A DNA stretch of 64,000 nucleotides, taken from positions 1,929,404-1,993,403 of the forward strand of contig CAJFCJ010000007.1 in NCBI GenBank assembly GCA_904063045.1. The letters run 5' to 3'. This document shows positions 23,942 to 30,100 of the stretch, one piece after another. A model generated the notes under the pieces. The model ran no database searches and was not told where the DNA came from. It saw only the letters and a program-made list of their open reading frames with translations. Every line of letters begins with the position of its first letter. Within the stretch, counting starts at the first letter, position 1. This DNA comes from Dimorphilus gyrociliatus (Eukaryota > Animalia > Annelida). Position numbers and translations under genes: made by a program.

Positions 23942-25646
23942 TTAGTTTAAGTACTGAAATAGCTGTCGAAAGGGATTGTCTTCTTTAAATGTCCACTTGT
24001 CGAAATCATTAAATGCTGTTGTACTCTCTAAAGTAGTCCAGTTAGTTCGTAAAGCGGCCTGACTCTTTAATAGAATTAAATGTAAAGCCAAATGATTGTT
24101 TGGCAGAATGGGACCAACAACGTCCATCCAATACTTGAAGTTTTCTTTCCCATTGCTCCCTTGTTGCATAACTCCATGACGGTATTTGCAAGAAACGAGT
24201 GTTGCACCACAAAATACAACAGGCGATAAGAGCGTCGGAGGGACACCGGCGTAAATTCCTGTTTGAGGAATTAGCGCCCGCCTGTTAATAATAAAGTTGT
24301 AAAAGGCGTGCACTTGGGAATCTTTAATTAGGACAGTCGAAGATGGCCGATCATCTACTTTCCGAAAATTTTCTTTCCATTTGCTATCAGCTGTAAAGCC
24401 GACAACTTGAGTTTTTTCAACCATATCTTTTATTATCTCATCCTCACTATCATCTTCGTCTTCATCAGAGCTTTCACTTTTATTGTCATTTACCACACAT
24501 TCTTTTTTCTCTTCAGAAGATTCATTTAGTGGCATGGAAAATTCAATTCCTTCGCTTGATAGGGCTTTTCTTAATCCAACCGACGTAGGTGTTAATGCCA
24601 CAGTCATTATCTCTTCAGGATGTAGCATAGGGCTTTTAAATAGAGCCGTAAAAAAAGGAGCATTTAGGTAAAAATATGGACATTTTCCCGCCTTTAACAT
24701 AGTGTATAAACTCGTTAAACTATTTTTCCTGTATTCAACAGTAATGACATTTTTAATATATAAAAAATAATAATTATAGCTAGTACAAACCAAGAGTCAA
24801 TAATCAATTTTTGGGCGTCGTCAGAAAGTAGATTTGGTAAACGTGCGCTTGATTTACTAAAACAAAAAGAAAAAGATAACCATTGTTTATTTGTACAAAT
24901 TAAAAGCAAATAACGAACGGGGATGAACTTTCTAATCTTGGAAAGAGTTTTAACCAAGGAAAAACCGGATGTTGCCAGAGCATATTCGCAGATTTTAATC
25001 TACGTTTTAGAACGTGAGGAGTTTTTTCTTCATTGTGAAGGAGATTTTTTAACTCAACAAACTCCGAAATAGAATCTGCCTCCTCACTAGTCCTTAGAGG
25101 CTGGCACCAATCAAACGGTTCGTTTGATAAGAATCTTAATTTAGTCTTCAAAGACCAATCAACAGTTGACCAAATTGTGGATTGTTCGTTCTGTTTCTCC
25201 TCAGGTACTTGTTTAGAACTTGAATTCAGATTTTCTGAAGACGGTACTTCAAAATCATTAATTAGTTTCTCATAATCGTCACCCGCGAGCACTTCATCGC
25301 TGTTCTGATAAATGATAAAGAAATTAAGCCGCTATCAAGGTTATCGTTTTAATGATGTGCTTACAAAAGATTGATTAAAACTGGGCTGCTTCTGAAGTCG
25401 CGAAAATACAGAATTATCATCTGGGTTTTCACTTTTAATGTTAATCCTGGGACTTTTAGATAAACTTTGTTGTGAAAGAAACGGGTTTTTTCGTTTGACA
25501 CCTGGTTTTCTATTTACAGTAGCAGGACCTTGTGTTGAAAAATCTCCGTCTGACAAACTTCTCACAGCAGGTAACTTTTTCTTTTTTTTCCGCCCTTTTA
25601 AAATATCGTTTGGTCTCTTCCATGGAGAAGTATCATTATCAGTCAT
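23942..25646 (-). CDS. DONSON: Protein downstream neighbor of Son (replisome factor), multi-exon
   Basis: N-terminus SPWKRPNDILKGRKKKK...KRKNPF. Core motifs VDWSLKTKLRFLSNEPFDW, WQHPVFPWLKLFPR, DSW|KNSLTSLYTMLKAGKCPYFY, GVPPTLLSPVVFCGATL and GPILP. Confidence 0.93.
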
Positions 25647-25760
25647 AACTGAAATGAGGTTATATAAAATTAATATAAATTCCTACATAAAACAATTGGT
25701 AAAGAATTTTATCATATTAAAAAAAACAGGTATATTTCTCGAATTAGCAACTTTATTTAG

Positions 25761-26810
25761 CTAAACTAATAGTTGTTTATGCGTCGTAAATTCTGTCATT
25801 GCATTTTCGATAGCTTCCGGAAATTTTTCCAAAGGTACTTTAGAAACAGGTGGACACTTAAGTTTATTCTTTTTTATAAGAGAAGAGAGATAGTCTAATG
25901 TGCGATATCGTTCGGCTGATTGATTATTTTCGTCATTCCATCTAGACATCCAAAATCCTTTGAAGGTAATATCAGCAAAAATTAAAGAGGCAGCGCTAGC
26001 CTTGAATGGTATTTTCGACATACAACCATATGTAACCATAGTTCCTTTCGGTCTTATATATTTAAGAAAATTAGTAGCGCTCATTCCGCCTACACAGTTG
26101 AGGGCTAATTTTGGCGCACTTTCCTTTCGTAAGATGTCCGATAATTGCGTTTTGCATTCTTCCTCTGTTAGCACATAATCAGCACCCATATCAAATAGAA
26201 ATCTTTTTAAATTTTCAACACGCGGTCGATCTCGAATTACATTTACGGTCTTGATCCTTAAATCTGTCGCTATTTGTATAACCGCCTGACCGACAGCACT
26301 ATTTGCACCGTTCTGTAGAACTACATCTCCCTCATCAATGCGTTCAAAGTCCATCAACATCCTATAAGCCGTACATGGATTTACAGATAAAGTTGCAGCT
26401 GATTCCAAAGGTAGGCTATTATCTATTTTAATAGCGTCTTTCTCATTGAAGACAGCATGAGAACGCCAAGTACCTGAGCCTGCTAAAGCTGGAATTACCC
26501 AATCGCCAACTTTTAAATTTTGACTTTTGGTTTCAATAACTGTAGCAACCCCCTCGTTCCCACCTACTGCTGGCATTGAGGGTTTTATCGGATAAACCCC
26601 TTGAATTTGATTAATATCTGCTGGATTGACTGAGGAGGCAAGGAATTTTAGCAAAACCTGACCATCTTTCAATGGTTGTATTTCTCTTTCACGTCCAACT
26701 AATACCTTTCTCGGATCACCATAATTTTCATAAATAACGTTGAAAGATGATAGGCAATTTTTTTGTTGAAAAAAACATTTAGCTGAACGTTTAACAGTAA
26801 ACGACAACAT
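25761..26810 (-). CDS. MECR: Mitochondrial trans-2-enoyl-ACP/CoA reductase, intronless, 349 aa
   Basis: Basic presequence-like N-terminus followed by NPADINQIQGVYP, VGGNEGV, GTWRSHA, AATLSVNPCTAYRML, QNGANSAVGQAVIQ, LALNCVGG and GFWMSRW. Confidence 0.96.
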   Translation of the reverse strand: MLSFTVKRSAKCFFQQKNCLSSFNVIYENYGDPRKVLVGREREIQPLKDGQVLLKFLASSVNPADINQIQGVYPIKPSMPAVGGNEGVATVIETKSQNLKVGDWVIPALAGSGTWRSHAVFNEKDAIKIDNSLPLESAATLSVNPCTAYRMLMDFERIDEGDVVLQNGANSAVGQAVIQIATDLRIKTVNVIRDRPRVENLKRFLFDMGADYVLTEEECKTQLSDILRKESAPKLALNCVGGMSATNFLKYIRPKGTMVTYGCMSKIPFKASAASLIFADITFKGFWMSRWNDENNQSAERYRTLDYLSSLIKKNKLKCPPVSKVPLEKFPEAIENAMTEFTTHKQLLV

Positions 26811-27077
26811 CGCGATGAAAGAAGGCGATAAATGGATAATAATACGACCTTATAGTGTCCGTAAAACTAAAATGGAGTATTGTTTAAAGCGAAATAGAAC
26901 TGAGGAAACGTTGGATGAATGTAAATACAAGTGTTACTTAATGTATACAATCAAATGTCTTGATTATCGCAAATATTATTTAAAGTGCCACCTTAAATAA
27001 AAACATAAGACGAAAATACTCTATATATAATTGTTTTTACCTCTTAAAAACAGAAAAGTCAAACCGCTATACAAAAT

Positions 27078-27088
27078 TTTTGGCGGGA
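27078..27088. promoter_or_regulatory. E2F consensus site TTTTGGCGGGA
   Basis: Matches TTTSSCGS in the short divergent interval between MECR/DONSON and SPAG17. Confidence 0.55.
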
Positions 27089-27112
27089 TCGAGTAAAAAC
27101 TGGTATTACCTA

Positions 27113-27125
27113 GTTGCTAGGCTAC
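27113..27125 (+). promoter_or_regulatory. RFX X-box GTTGCTAGGCTAC, 60 bp upstream of the SPAG17 ATG
   Basis: One mismatch to the 13-bp X-box GTTGCTAGGCAAC. SPAG17 is a motile-cilium gene, a class RFX is known to regulate. Confidence 0.6.
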
Positions 27126-27185: not shown

Positions 27186-30100
27186 ATGCCACCAAAGAGA
27201 GGTAAAAGTGGAGAGAGAAAAGGAGGTCAAGATGGTGATGCCGCTTGGGAAACAAAACTAGCTAATACAGTATTTTCAGAAGAGACTGAGGTAATATTAA
27301 CTTTATAGATATTAAGTTTTTATAGAATTTTATTTTAGGATGGATGGATTGCAACAATAGCCTGTCTCGTTGGCAACCGATATGAAGATTACGCATTAAT
27401 AAATAGCATCGAGGACACTATAAGATCAAAATCCAGAAGACTGTTTTCGACATTTTCCAAGAGTGAATTGTACAACGAGGTTAGAAGAGAATATATTAAG
27501 ATTTTTCATTTTCAACTTTACCTCTATTAAACCAAACCTCCTTTTCACAGTCAGTTGAATTTGGAAGCTCAAAAGGCAAAAAAGGAAAGGATGCCCCTCA
27601 ATTTGTCGAGGTTTACGAATATTGTAAAGAATATTTAGATAATAATGAGGAGGTTCCGTTGCAAGTTCAAGCAAAATTGATTAAGGCGAAATTACTTGCT
27701 ATAAAAAAAGAAGATCATGCCAGAAGAGAAGTAGAACGAAAGGTTTGATAAATTTTTATTATGCTCAACAAGTAATACATATAGTTTTTCTTTAATTAAG
27801 TGGCGTGAGGAAAGAGAGCGCAGACGGGCAGGTCAGAGCGATGGTGATGGAAAGAAAGGTAAAAAAGATAGAGGAAAATCACCGAAAGGGAAAGTGGGCA
27901 AAAAGACTCCGGAACCATCAGCGCCTAAAAATGAAAGTAAATTGCAAAAGAGAGGAGAGGAAGACTTAGACTCGAAGTATATTGGTAAGATAAAGCAGAA
28001 AGAAGATAAATTAAGAGATAAATTAAGACGACATTAAATTTTTTAAATTCTCCCATTCAGATGATGAACCAGATGATGGTAGCAAACACTATATTGTTAT
28101 ACATGGATTCAATCATCCTCACTTGTTTTCTTTTCTTTCGGAAATTGGCATTCACGTTGATGTGATCTATAAAGTTAAAATGGATGATTATAGTAGATTC
28201 GATAAATCTGAAGATGAAATTGTTGAAGAGAAAACAGAAAAACAACTATTAGTTGAAGAGGAGGAGAGAAAGAGATTAGAGGCTCTGACGAGAGAACTGG
28301 ATATGTTCTGGAGAGATATTACACCCGTCTTACAAATGAGTTCTGCATCGCCTAAATTGCACGACTTGCCAATTTTGCCGTTTGATATCAACAGTGCATC
28401 CATTCCAATTGATTTTCAAAATAGTGATAAAAAGGCTGAGGTTAGCTCCTCTCTTTTCGAAAAGCTAGCATGTGATACCTATGATTTATTGGATTGGAAA
28501 CGACAATGGCGAAATTTCATTGAAAATCTCAAACTATACCATGTTCCTGGGGTTTCTTCTGCAGCATTAGCAAATGATTCTCCTGGTACAGCAGCTCCTA
28601 CTCCCGCCCCAACAAGTGCTCCCCCTATAGTAGATGATTTAAGCTCAGACGTTGACATGCGTTACTATAAAGATTTAATGGACTGCATACCTCACGAAAG
28701 CGTTTCAGTTCCTTTGATAGTAAATTGTATGGTAGAGCAAGTTGCTGCAACAGCAGAGCATCGATTACCACCTTCTGCAGAAACTAAACTCCCAAGAGCG
28801 GACGGACTATGTGACTCTTTGGCTGATCATTTAAACAGATTGGCTTCAAACATGGCTCTCGATCCTAATGAAGTTAGAGCCTTATCTTCTGAATACGAGA
28901 TTCCAGATAAAAAGTTGGATGGAAATCGTCATCCTCTGCTCATCAACTACTCTGACGAAGCAAAGACCCGACTAAGAAACCTACAAACGAACATTGATCT
29001 ATTTAATCCTCTACAAACAGAAAGCTACATGAACACGAGATTCCCAACAAATACTCTCCTTGCTCCTCCGGAATCGCCTCCAGAAAAAGCTAAATTGAAA
29101 AGAATTTCTAGATTACAAGAACTTTTAACATTTTGTTCGACACCTGGTATCTCGAAAAACGAAGTAGATATAATTTTACGGCAATTTGTTTTTGAATGTC
29201 TAAGGTCAACAGAAGTTGATGAAAATGGACAGGTTGTAAAATTTTATGGAAAAAATCTTATTCCGTGGGATGATCCTTATCCATATTATCATGGAATTCT
29301 TGGTATTTTTAATATAGAGGAAGAGGATAAATTCCCCGTTACGCCTGTTAGACAAGAAAGTGTAGAAGTTCCTACGACAAGACCTGGTAAGAATTTATTC
29401 GCGATTTATTTCCATTTTATAATTTTGATTGTTTTTAGAATCTCGGTTATCGGAGAAGTCTTCATCGGGTGAATCGGCAGAAATTAGCACTCAAAAGTCA
29501 AGTAAAAAAGAGCGAAAAAGCCGATCAAAATCTAAAAGAGGTGCGACTTTTATGTATTTGCTAACAGTTTAGATAACACATTTATTATTTTCTAATAGTA
29601 TACCTTTCTTTCTTTCTTTTATTTTTACTATTACTTGTATGTCACTTTAATTATTGCTTTCTTATCTCAGGTAAAAACAGCGCCGATAAAGCAGTTAGGG
29701 TTACTGAAGAACCTGTTGAAGTAGTTCCGCCACCATCTCCTAAAGAAACTGGTGGAATACTGAAAGATTCTAAAAGACCGCGGTCCTCGTCCTCTCGTGA
29801 CTCAAGTGTGCACTTTGAAAGAGATGATATTGGTCTGACGGTCTCTCACCCTGGAGACGAGTTCGAAACCATAGATCAAGCGTCAATACTTGATAGATTA
29901 TCAGATATTGTTGAGGCTCAACGGAGAAACCTCGATCAGTGGACTTTTGTCGAACAATTAGATATAAATGTTCTACATCAGGTTATTAAAGAAGCCTCAT
30001 ATACACTACCTTATATGGATACTTTGTATTCAAGACGAGACAACAAACTCTTGGTTATGCTGAGTAATCCTTATGATAAAAAACTTCTAGCAAACTATGA

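Follow-up and report, generated by a model that had tools for sequence, protein, structure and literature searches.

How does a gene obtain the 5′ end of its mRNA when its start codon lies little more than a hundred nucleotides beyond the stop codon of its upstream neighbour? The question is raised by a locus of the annelid Dimorphilus gyrociliatus (the window analysed is a 64,000-nucleotide stretch of contig CAJFCJ010000007.1), where MECR and DONSON follow one another on the minus strand with 114 nt between the MECR stop (25761) and the DONSON ATG (25646). Here, conserved splice signals suggest that DONSON may borrow the promoter of MECR, by splicing over the whole of the MECR gene.

Layout of the locus

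Working along the minus strand, we see that the coding sequence of MECR, the mitochondrial trans-2-enoyl thioester reductase (25761..26810, 349 aa), is a single intronless open reading frame ending in a TAG stop codon (25763-25761). It matches human MECR (1zsy) over residues 24-348 (E 1.5e-98), carries Pfam matches to ADH_N and ADH_zinc_N and is closest to characterised MECR/Etr1 proteins; the genome holds only one full copy. On the other side lies SPAG17, divergent from MECR, its first coding exon of 35 codons at 27186..27290 on the plus strand; further downstream in the same gene, the open reading frame at 28123-29469 matches PDB entry 9ijj_x, ‘Sperm-associated antigen 17’ (E 2.3e-53), and a PapD-like domain is found on its C-terminal exon.

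Downstream of MECR, and also on the minus strand, DONSON is built from four exons. Exon 1 (25365..25646) contributes 94 codons and is 77% identical to the exon-1 reading frame of a relative (species A), starting at the same ATG. In similarity searches made with each exon separately, exon 2 (24919..25304) matches residues 155-241 of Xenopus DONSON (8q6o_R; E 1.9e-9) and exon 4, which includes the stop codon (23942..24728), matches residues 271-527 (E 2.7e-38); between them, the frame of exon 3 (24791..24856) was set by hand, its boundaries being identical in species A. The exon model yields a full-length protein of 506 aa, and Pfam family PF27662 is present on the DONSON exons of relatives. The donors of the gene's own introns are weak (GTTCGT, GTTTGT). 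An initial annotation of this DNA had placed the two genes on one strand with a 114-bp gap; on re-reading, all of its coordinates hold, to the base.

The gap between MECR and DONSON

Moving into the gap, an AATAAA poly(A) signal for MECR (25752..25757, minus strand) is located 3 nt past the stop codon; in species A the equivalent signal is found ~20 nt past the stop. There follows a TG plus a run of eight T (25719..25728, minus strand), positioned like a downstream U/GU-rich element and not conserved in species A. The remaining feature is a module resembling a 3′ splice site (25649..25685, minus strand): TAGGAAT at 25685-25679, a branch-point-like TTAAT at 25673-25669, and then a zone free of AG up to TCATTTCAG, whose terminal TTTCAG ends at 25649 and is followed by TT and the DONSON ATG. 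The poly(A) signal, T-rich tract and TTTCAG of the initial annotation are thus all present at the positions given for them.

In species A the gap holds TAGGAAT, CTAAT and TTCATTCAG, likewise ordered, and conservation within the gap is confined to this ~37-nt module beside the ATG (TAGGAAT, YTAAT and TCATT(T)CAG). The identity of the gap to species A (47% and 58%, versus 61-64%) is comparable to that of two of the three DONSON introns, 1 and 3, and the comparison reveals no conserved promoter-like block within it. The conserved TCAGTT at the end of the module, also a fly-type initiator consensus, could instead mark a start site, a point against a leader shared with MECR.

Four GT dinucleotides are available as donors inside the gap: GTAGGA (25686) and those at 25751, 25727 and 25693. 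GTAGGA had been singled out as the only decent donor, and while the 38-nt intron calculated for it is correct, it does not stand alone; nor can weak donors be dismissed, because the donors of DONSON itself are weak. None of these GTs is conserved in species A, where GTAGGA reads ATAGGA, and we reject the 38-nt intron for that reason. The gap of D. gyrociliatus also contains two ATGs; were the DONSON mRNA to begin early in the gap and keep its leader unspliced, both would precede the DONSON start codon.

The promoter and putative leader upstream of MECR

The region between SPAG17 and MECR is of a different character. An X-box-like motif (27113..27125), presumably a site for RFX as judged from the consensus, precedes the SPAG17 ATG by 61-73 nt; it is conserved in species A, and a similar motif is found in the SPAG17-MECR intergenic region of Paralvinella. 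Closer to MECR, the E2F site previously noted at 27078-27088 is borne out as an E2F-like TTTGGCGG (27079-27086, read on the plus strand; in extended form GGCGGGAT), the core of which is conserved in species A; no E2F-like motif was found in the Paralvinella intergenic region.

The putative non-coding leader exon (27041..27100, minus strand, with a nominal 5′ end) stops at a donor, GAG/GTAAAA (27041/27040), that is conserved as GAG/GTAAAG in species A. This donor sits at the edge of a promoter block conserved with species A (77% identity by BLAST; across the full MAFFT alignment, A1, column identity averages 85%), and beyond it identity falls to 54% across the putative MECR leader intron (26867..27040, minus strand). 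Candidate acceptors for that intron are found at 26992 (AG at 26993-26992), 26900 and 26867, giving introns of 49, 141 and 174 nt, respectively; the coordinates of the splice pair originally proposed, and the 49 nt that it would remove, stand, whilst the choice of 26992 as acceptor is uncertain. In species A the leader-intron stretch contains five ATGs, with none in the flanking pieces of the leader.

The leader promoter holds the one E2F-type site that is conserved within 1.4 kb upstream of DONSON. A further E2F-like site, in the MECR coding sequence (26110-26117), was considered as a conserved element and rejected, having been lost in species A. Human DONSON is listed among RB-E2F targets (PMC9090780), and in the D. 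gyrociliatus genome the GGCGGGAT/TTTGGCGC motifs recur 90-110 nt ahead of the PCNA ATG; we infer that the E2F site upstream of MECR serves DONSON. Many housekeeping promoters hold E2F sites, so the one at the MECR leader need not do so.

Counts of the motifs within the window differ: TTTSGCGS by itself is not enriched (6 occurrences versus 4.6 expected), whilst the acceptor motif TTTCAGNNATG occurs 5 times versus 0.93 expected. Three of the four other TTTCAGNNATG matches are not at the start of a gene (two as judged by lists of open reading frames, one lying in an exon-like reading frame), and we assume these three to be internal acceptors. Both the acceptor and the E2F motif amount to more than chance because both are conserved in a second species.

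Conservation and evolutionary order

The MECR-DONSON tandem is kept in three taxa, with gaps of 114 nt (D. gyrociliatus), 99 nt (species A) and 90 nt (species B); the MECR proteins of the three are 78-86% identical in pairwise comparison (78% for that of species A). Comparison at the level of DNA is with species A alone, species B contributing gene coordinates. As in D. gyrociliatus, MECR is a single reading frame in species A and in Paralvinella, and the check proposed at the outset, of adjacency and MECR intron content among relatives, thereby returns the tandem in species A and B and an intronless MECR in species A and Paralvinella.

In Paralvinella, the intronless MECR is arranged head-to-head with SPAG17 and no DONSON is found within 10 kb of it. 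The SPAG17/MECR pair therefore came first and DONSON later; this shows that the promoter was ancestrally that of SPAG17 and MECR, with DONSON joining the MECR transcription unit afterwards and not the reverse. The earlier description of MECR as ‘nested’ in the DONSON leader does not, in its evolutionary sense, survive this comparison. We also considered MECR as a retrogene inserted into the DONSON leader, and rejected it on the same arrangement in Paralvinella.

A proposed leader shared by splicing, and its alternatives

We tentatively favour, at not quite an even chance, an explanation in which the DONSON mRNA would arise when the leader exon of MECR is cis-spliced to 25649, an event competing with use of the MECR poly(A) site. 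The two genes would then form one transcription unit, under the control of the bidirectional SPAG17/MECR promoter with its E2F site; transcription would start a few tens of nucleotides before 27041, generating a short non-coding leader exon. Where the donor at 27041/27040 is joined to 26992, 26900 or 26867, the product would be MECR mRNA, cleaved and polyadenylated soon after the AATAAA at 25757-25752. Alternatively, the polymerase would continue ~100 nt beyond the AATAAA, and the same donor would be joined to 25649, removing the MECR reading frame as a 1,392-nt intron and leaving a DONSON mRNA in which 25646 provides the first AUG; the ratio of the two mRNAs would be set by the competition between splicing and polyadenylation.

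Being intronless, MECR could sit whole inside one alternative intron, and in this single-exon nested frame the locus is like gene pairs that share a leader. A donor upstream of the MECR frame and an acceptor past its stop are both present and, at the level of sequence, both conserved in species A, from which we infer that the distal 27041-to-25648 junction (contig positions 1,956,444 to 1,955,051) may be used. The shared leader put forward in the initial annotation thus retains its donor, E2F core and acceptor, each conserved in species A, and a gap without a conserved promoter block, and loses the ‘nested’ wording. An intron of 1,392 nt would be unusual in a species with a median intron of 66 bp (PMC7854359), an observation that speaks against the shared leader.

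On balance unlikely, albeit to be taken seriously, is the alternative that MECR and DONSON are tightly packed independent genes, with a minimal DONSON promoter located either in the distal gap or towards the end of the MECR coding sequence. TAGGAAT would be a factor site and TCAGTT an initiator, with the mRNA starting between a few and a few tens of nucleotides from the ATG. High gene density, and narrow promoters with pyrimidine-purine initiators, are indeed features of D. gyrociliatus (PMC7854359). TCAGTT (TCAGCT in species A) fits the initiator consensus, TA-rich stretches are located ~27-32 nt upstream in both species, and TCAGTT also precedes the ATG of TCP11 in another tight pair. Against this, a start at the A of TCAGTT would give a leader of 4 nt, which in the scanning model is poor for AUG recognition, and the MECR poly(A) site would lie just ~60-80 nt upstream of the DONSON start. 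The gap lacks a conserved E2F site, and outside the module its identity is at the level of introns, as opposed to the 77-88% conservation of the real promoter nearby; moreover, a branch-point-like site followed by an AG-free zone and a pyrimidine-rich YAG is an order more in keeping with a 3′ splice site than with a promoter.

A start within MECR itself, which we consider improbable, would place a DONSON promoter or leader in a dinophilid-specific stretch of the coding sequence conserved at the nucleotide level (26211..26297, minus strand; codons 172-200), with a donor-like ACC/GTAAAT at 26246 joined to 25649 across a 598-nt intron; AAT/GTAATT, at 26240, is a second donor-like site, and both are conserved. 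In the bin of codons 176-200, third positions are identical to species A in 22 of 23 cases versus ~0.6 elsewhere (binomial p ~1e-4, uncorrected), whilst third-position identity to Paralvinella, which lacks the DONSON neighbour, is 0.25, and hence without excess. The block yields no RNA fold signal and no Rfam match and is unique in the genome, so is not an RNA structure, known RNA family or repeat. Saying this, no core-promoter or E2F motif is recognisable in the block or just upstream, where conservation stops, unlike what is expected for a promoter; it spans the NADPH-binding motif, such that the protein accounts for some of the constraint, and its conservation rests on a comparison of two species.

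Two further readings dispense with a cis-spliced leader. In an operon, cleavage at the MECR poly(A) site would divide a polycistronic precursor, and 25649 would accept a trans-spliced leader; the layout (AATAAA, U-run, ~100 nt and TTTCAG by the ATG) is that of nematode intercistronic regions, a short region of this kind being present across gaps of 114, 99 and 90 nt, and the gap has no conserved donor of its own. We nonetheless regard it as very unlikely: a conserved cis donor exists upstream, and the published k-mer test for a spliced leader in D. gyrociliatus was negative (PMC7854359), which speaks against the trans-splicing alternative offered in the initial annotation. A search of the literature found no report of spliced leaders in annelids, and the Rfam SL1 model returned no match on the genome, control genomes being equally silent. 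Less likely again is translation of DONSON from an unprocessed bicistronic mRNA, by reinitiation or internal entry. The single strand, the 114-nt spacer and the one conserved promoter upstream would all accommodate it, but reinitiation would have to follow a frame of 349 codons, past which it is very inefficient. A canonical AATAAA stands directly after the MECR stop, two ATGs lie within the gap of D. gyrociliatus, and the conserved acceptor-like module would be left unexplained.

Splicing of the MECR leader to DONSON may have counterparts, there being two further tight pairs on the same contig in which the upstream gene is intronless and an AG lies 0-5 nt before the downstream ATG, both picked for this pattern. 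It is conceivable, if doubtful, that there exists a class of promoter-less ‘hitch-hiker’ genes, expressed by cis-splicing of an intronless upstream gene's leader, over that gene, to an acceptor just before their own ATG. Such a class would be the cis-splicing counterpart of operons, with MECR-DONSON, ARL14EP-TCP11 (near contig position 1,557,300) and RCE1-zinc-finger (near 1,185,400) as its members on one contig.

Discussion

Use of the distal splice would leave a core replication-initiation factor without a promoter of its own, making DONSON reliant on the promoter and leader exon of an unrelated mitochondrial gene and on how strong the poly(A) site of that gene is. This would provide one route by which, in the absence of trans-splicing, genes come through breakpoints and extreme compaction. 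The published analysis of D. gyrociliatus describes a canonical promoter landscape in which operons are absent, the MECR-DONSON locus not being tested there (PMC7854359); the distal splice, if true, would qualify its conclusion of canonical gene regulation after compaction. Should the gap instead hold a minimal promoter, the locus would merely be an example of very tight gene packing.

Amongst known systems, the cholinergic locus (VAChT in the first intron of ChAT; unc-17/cha-1) is likewise organised around a single-exon reading frame, preceded by a 5′ non-coding exon and followed, on the same strand, by the first coding exon of a second gene. There, two mRNAs are made through alternative splicing and several promoters, in an arrangement conserved in nematodes, flies and mammals (PMC3053374). 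Its two products share a pathway, whereas no functional link is known between MECR and DONSON; at MECR-DONSON, in addition, just 114 nt separate the stop of one from the ATG of the other, the promoter was originally that of the upstream gene, and use of the shared exon is our reading of the sequence.

The spliced-leader operons of nematodes and tunicates resemble the locus in their upstream poly(A) signal, U-rich tract, ~100-nt spacer and TTTCAG before the ATG, but differ in that MECR-DONSON has a conserved cis donor upstream and no annelid spliced leader is known or found in D. gyrociliatus (PMC7854359). In composite terminal exon or intronic polyadenylation switches, such as that between the secreted and membrane forms of immunoglobulin mu, polyadenylation competes on one precursor with splicing to an acceptor further downstream and so determines the mRNA produced, as is proposed here; the outcome of switches of that type is two forms of one protein, where MECR-DONSON would give two unrelated proteins. 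Lastly, tightly packed tandem genes of compact genomes have similarly short spacing, the downstream promoter overlapping the 3′ end of the upstream gene; the spacer between MECR and DONSON, by contrast, is without a conserved promoter block, and what is conserved in it resembles a 3′ splice site.

Gene content of the locus

MECR, on the minus strand, is an uninterrupted open reading frame of 349 codons (26810–25761) with the Pfam domains ADH_N and ADH_zinc_N; it matches human MECR (1zsy; E 1.5e-98), and the genome has no second full copy. Its stop codon lies 114 nt from the start of DONSON, which we modelled by hand on the same strand as four exons, searched singly: exon 1 (25646–25365), exon 2 (25304–24919), exon 3 (24856–24791) and exon 4 (24728–23942), separated by introns of 60, 62 and 62 nt; exons 2 and 4 match Xenopus DONSON (8q6o_R; E 1.9e-9 and 2.7e-38, respectively). 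All motifs and coordinates of the initial annotation are found in the window sequence.

The plus-strand gene starting at 27186 is SPAG17 (ORF 28123–29469 against PDB 9ijj_x, E 2.3e-53; last exon with a PapD-like domain), which places the E2F-like site within a bidirectional SPAG17/MECR promoter. This promoter also holds an X-box (RFX)-like motif (27113–27125; 61–73 nt upstream of the SPAG17 ATG), kept in species A and with a similar motif in Paralvinella (contig L008, ~9545); its presence is consistent with SPAG17 being a ciliary gene.

Gene order in relatives

A MECR word search identified two close relatives, species B (79% identity to the window) and species A (78%), which share 86% identity. 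In species A (contig L001) the order is SPAG17 first exon, intronless MECR, 99 nt, then DONSON exon 1; in species B, gene coordinates alone give 90 nt from the MECR stop to the start of the next gene. In Paralvinella palmiformis MECR is likewise one ORF, head-to-head with a 2,278-aa PapD-like protein (SPAG17), and the gene downstream of it is Oscp1, on the opposite strand; searching the 21-kb Paralvinella MECR locus with the DONSON exons (tblastn) gave no match, the control on L001 being positive. The intronless state of MECR and the SPAG17–MECR pair are thus old, with DONSON put behind MECR later—reversing the initial proposal that MECR is nested in the DONSON leader.

Conservation across the locus

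The window and L001, from the one relative with DNA, were aligned end to end and identity computed per feature. The promoter block, from the SPAG17 ATG to the leader donor, is conserved (0.77 by BLAST; column identity averaging 85% across the entire MAFFT alignment A1), and species A keeps both the E2F core and the donor, GAG/GTAAA. Identity is 0.54 in the leader intron, 0.72–0.78 in the MECR CDS, 0.47 and 0.58 in the proximal and distal parts of the gap, 0.74–0.86 in the DONSON exons, and 0.61 and 0.64 in DONSON introns 1 and 3. Only three gap elements are kept, in unchanged order and with no AG between them: TAGGAAT, then YTAAT, which resembles a branch point, and lastly TCATT(T)CAG, which stands two bases before the ATG. 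None of the GT dinucleotides of the gap is conserved with species A, where GTAGGA reads ATAGGA. In species A the presumed leader intron has five ATGs and the leader pieces on either side have none; this distribution argues for a genuine 5′ UTR intron, and for a proximal acceptor, itself uncertain, downstream of 26992.

Three further stretches stand out. Within a MECR CDS block of 0.93 identity (26300–26196), synonymous sites at 26297–26211 (codons 172–200) are near-invariant against species A, but not against Paralvinella; 22 of 23 third positions are identical to species A in codon bin 176–200, compared with ~0.6 elsewhere in MECR. The stretch 26297–26211 includes conserved donor-like GTAAAT and GTAATT, and a search there for a fold signal, repeat or Rfam match found none. 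DONSON intron 2 (24918–24857, 62 nt) has a weak GTTCGT donor and 94% identity to species A, against 61–64% for introns 1 and 3; six read-through codons lead to an in-frame TAA, beyond which lies a conserved AATAAA. Intron 2 may be retained in a regulated manner, or may contain a poly(A) site yielding a short N-terminal DONSON. Finally, 23990–22700, with more blocks to ~20100, comprises >1.2 kb without a long ORF at 90–98% identity to species A, far above neighbouring coding exons (72–80%); it starts within the last ~60 nt of the DONSON CDS. The next minus-strand gene beyond (16737–14434) is a PAS-domain gene which, by eye, resembles single-minded; the conserved blocks probably belong to this developmental gene, as regulatory elements or as 5′ exons.

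E2F sites

PCNA of D. gyrociliatus carries GGCGGGAT ~110 nt and TTTGGCGC ~92 nt upstream of its ATG, indicating that replication genes in this genome appear to use canonical E2F sites; human DONSON is itself listed among RB-E2F targets (PMC9090780). The sole conserved PCNA-type E2F site upstream of DONSON is that of the leader promoter, and neither a strict nor a relaxed pattern finds an E2F-like motif in the Paralvinella SPAG17–MECR intergenic region, at a locus from which DONSON is absent. This pattern is consistent with the site serving DONSON through a common promoter, as a correlation rather than proof. A copy of TTTGGCGC within the MECR CDS is lost in species A and was rejected as a conserved element.

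A proposed shared leader for MECR and DONSON

The mechanism we favour, tentatively and at sequence level, is a single promoter and leader alternatively spliced to MECR or DONSON. One short non-coding exon would serve both genes: joining donor 27041 to a proximal acceptor would give a MECR mRNA, cleaved past the AATAAA, and joining it to acceptor 25649 would remove MECR as a 1,392-nt intron, giving the DONSON mRNA. Plausibly, the arrangement arose by a breakpoint within an ancestral DONSON 5′ UTR intron; its acceptor and the coding exons would thereby have come to lie behind MECR, and transcripts reading through MECR could have rescued expression of the relocated gene.

A minimal DONSON promoter in the distal gap, where TCAGTT matches an initiator consensus, is rather unlikely: it would leave a 4-nt leader, and the rest of the gap looks neutral. 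It seems improbable that DONSON has an internal leader within the conserved MECR block, spliced from the GTAAAT donor at 26246. Trans-splicing of a spliced leader onto DONSON, raised in the initial annotation, we consider very improbable, given a negative k-mer test (PMC7854359) and the absence of annelid reports from the literature searched; a plain bicistronic MECR–DONSON mRNA is the least probable of these readings. Some probability is given to none of them.

The gene layout on which the alternatively spliced leader would act recurs at two further same-strand junctions on contig CAJFCJ010000007.1, chosen for the pattern and so speaking to recurrence, not frequency (gene identities from Pfam). 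At ~1,557,300 (L010, 4287–4437) intronless ARL14EP is followed after 128 nt by TCP11, with AAATCAGTTAAG abutting its ATG; at ~1,185,400 (L011, 3321–3543) intronless RCE1 is followed after a T-rich 219 nt by a zinc-finger gene, with TTGAACAG abutting its ATG. Both pairs have an AG 0–5 nt 5′ of the downstream ATG, and the ARL14EP and RCE1 5′ regions each have donor-like sites. Separately, the Paralvinella MECR ATG (L008, 9995–10003) is directly preceded by GATTTCAG and two bases, the layout seen at DONSON in the window; 5′ UTR intron acceptors placed right before the ATG may be common among annelids. The nearest known case to the arrangement proposed for MECR and DONSON is the VAChT/ChAT locus (PMC3053374).
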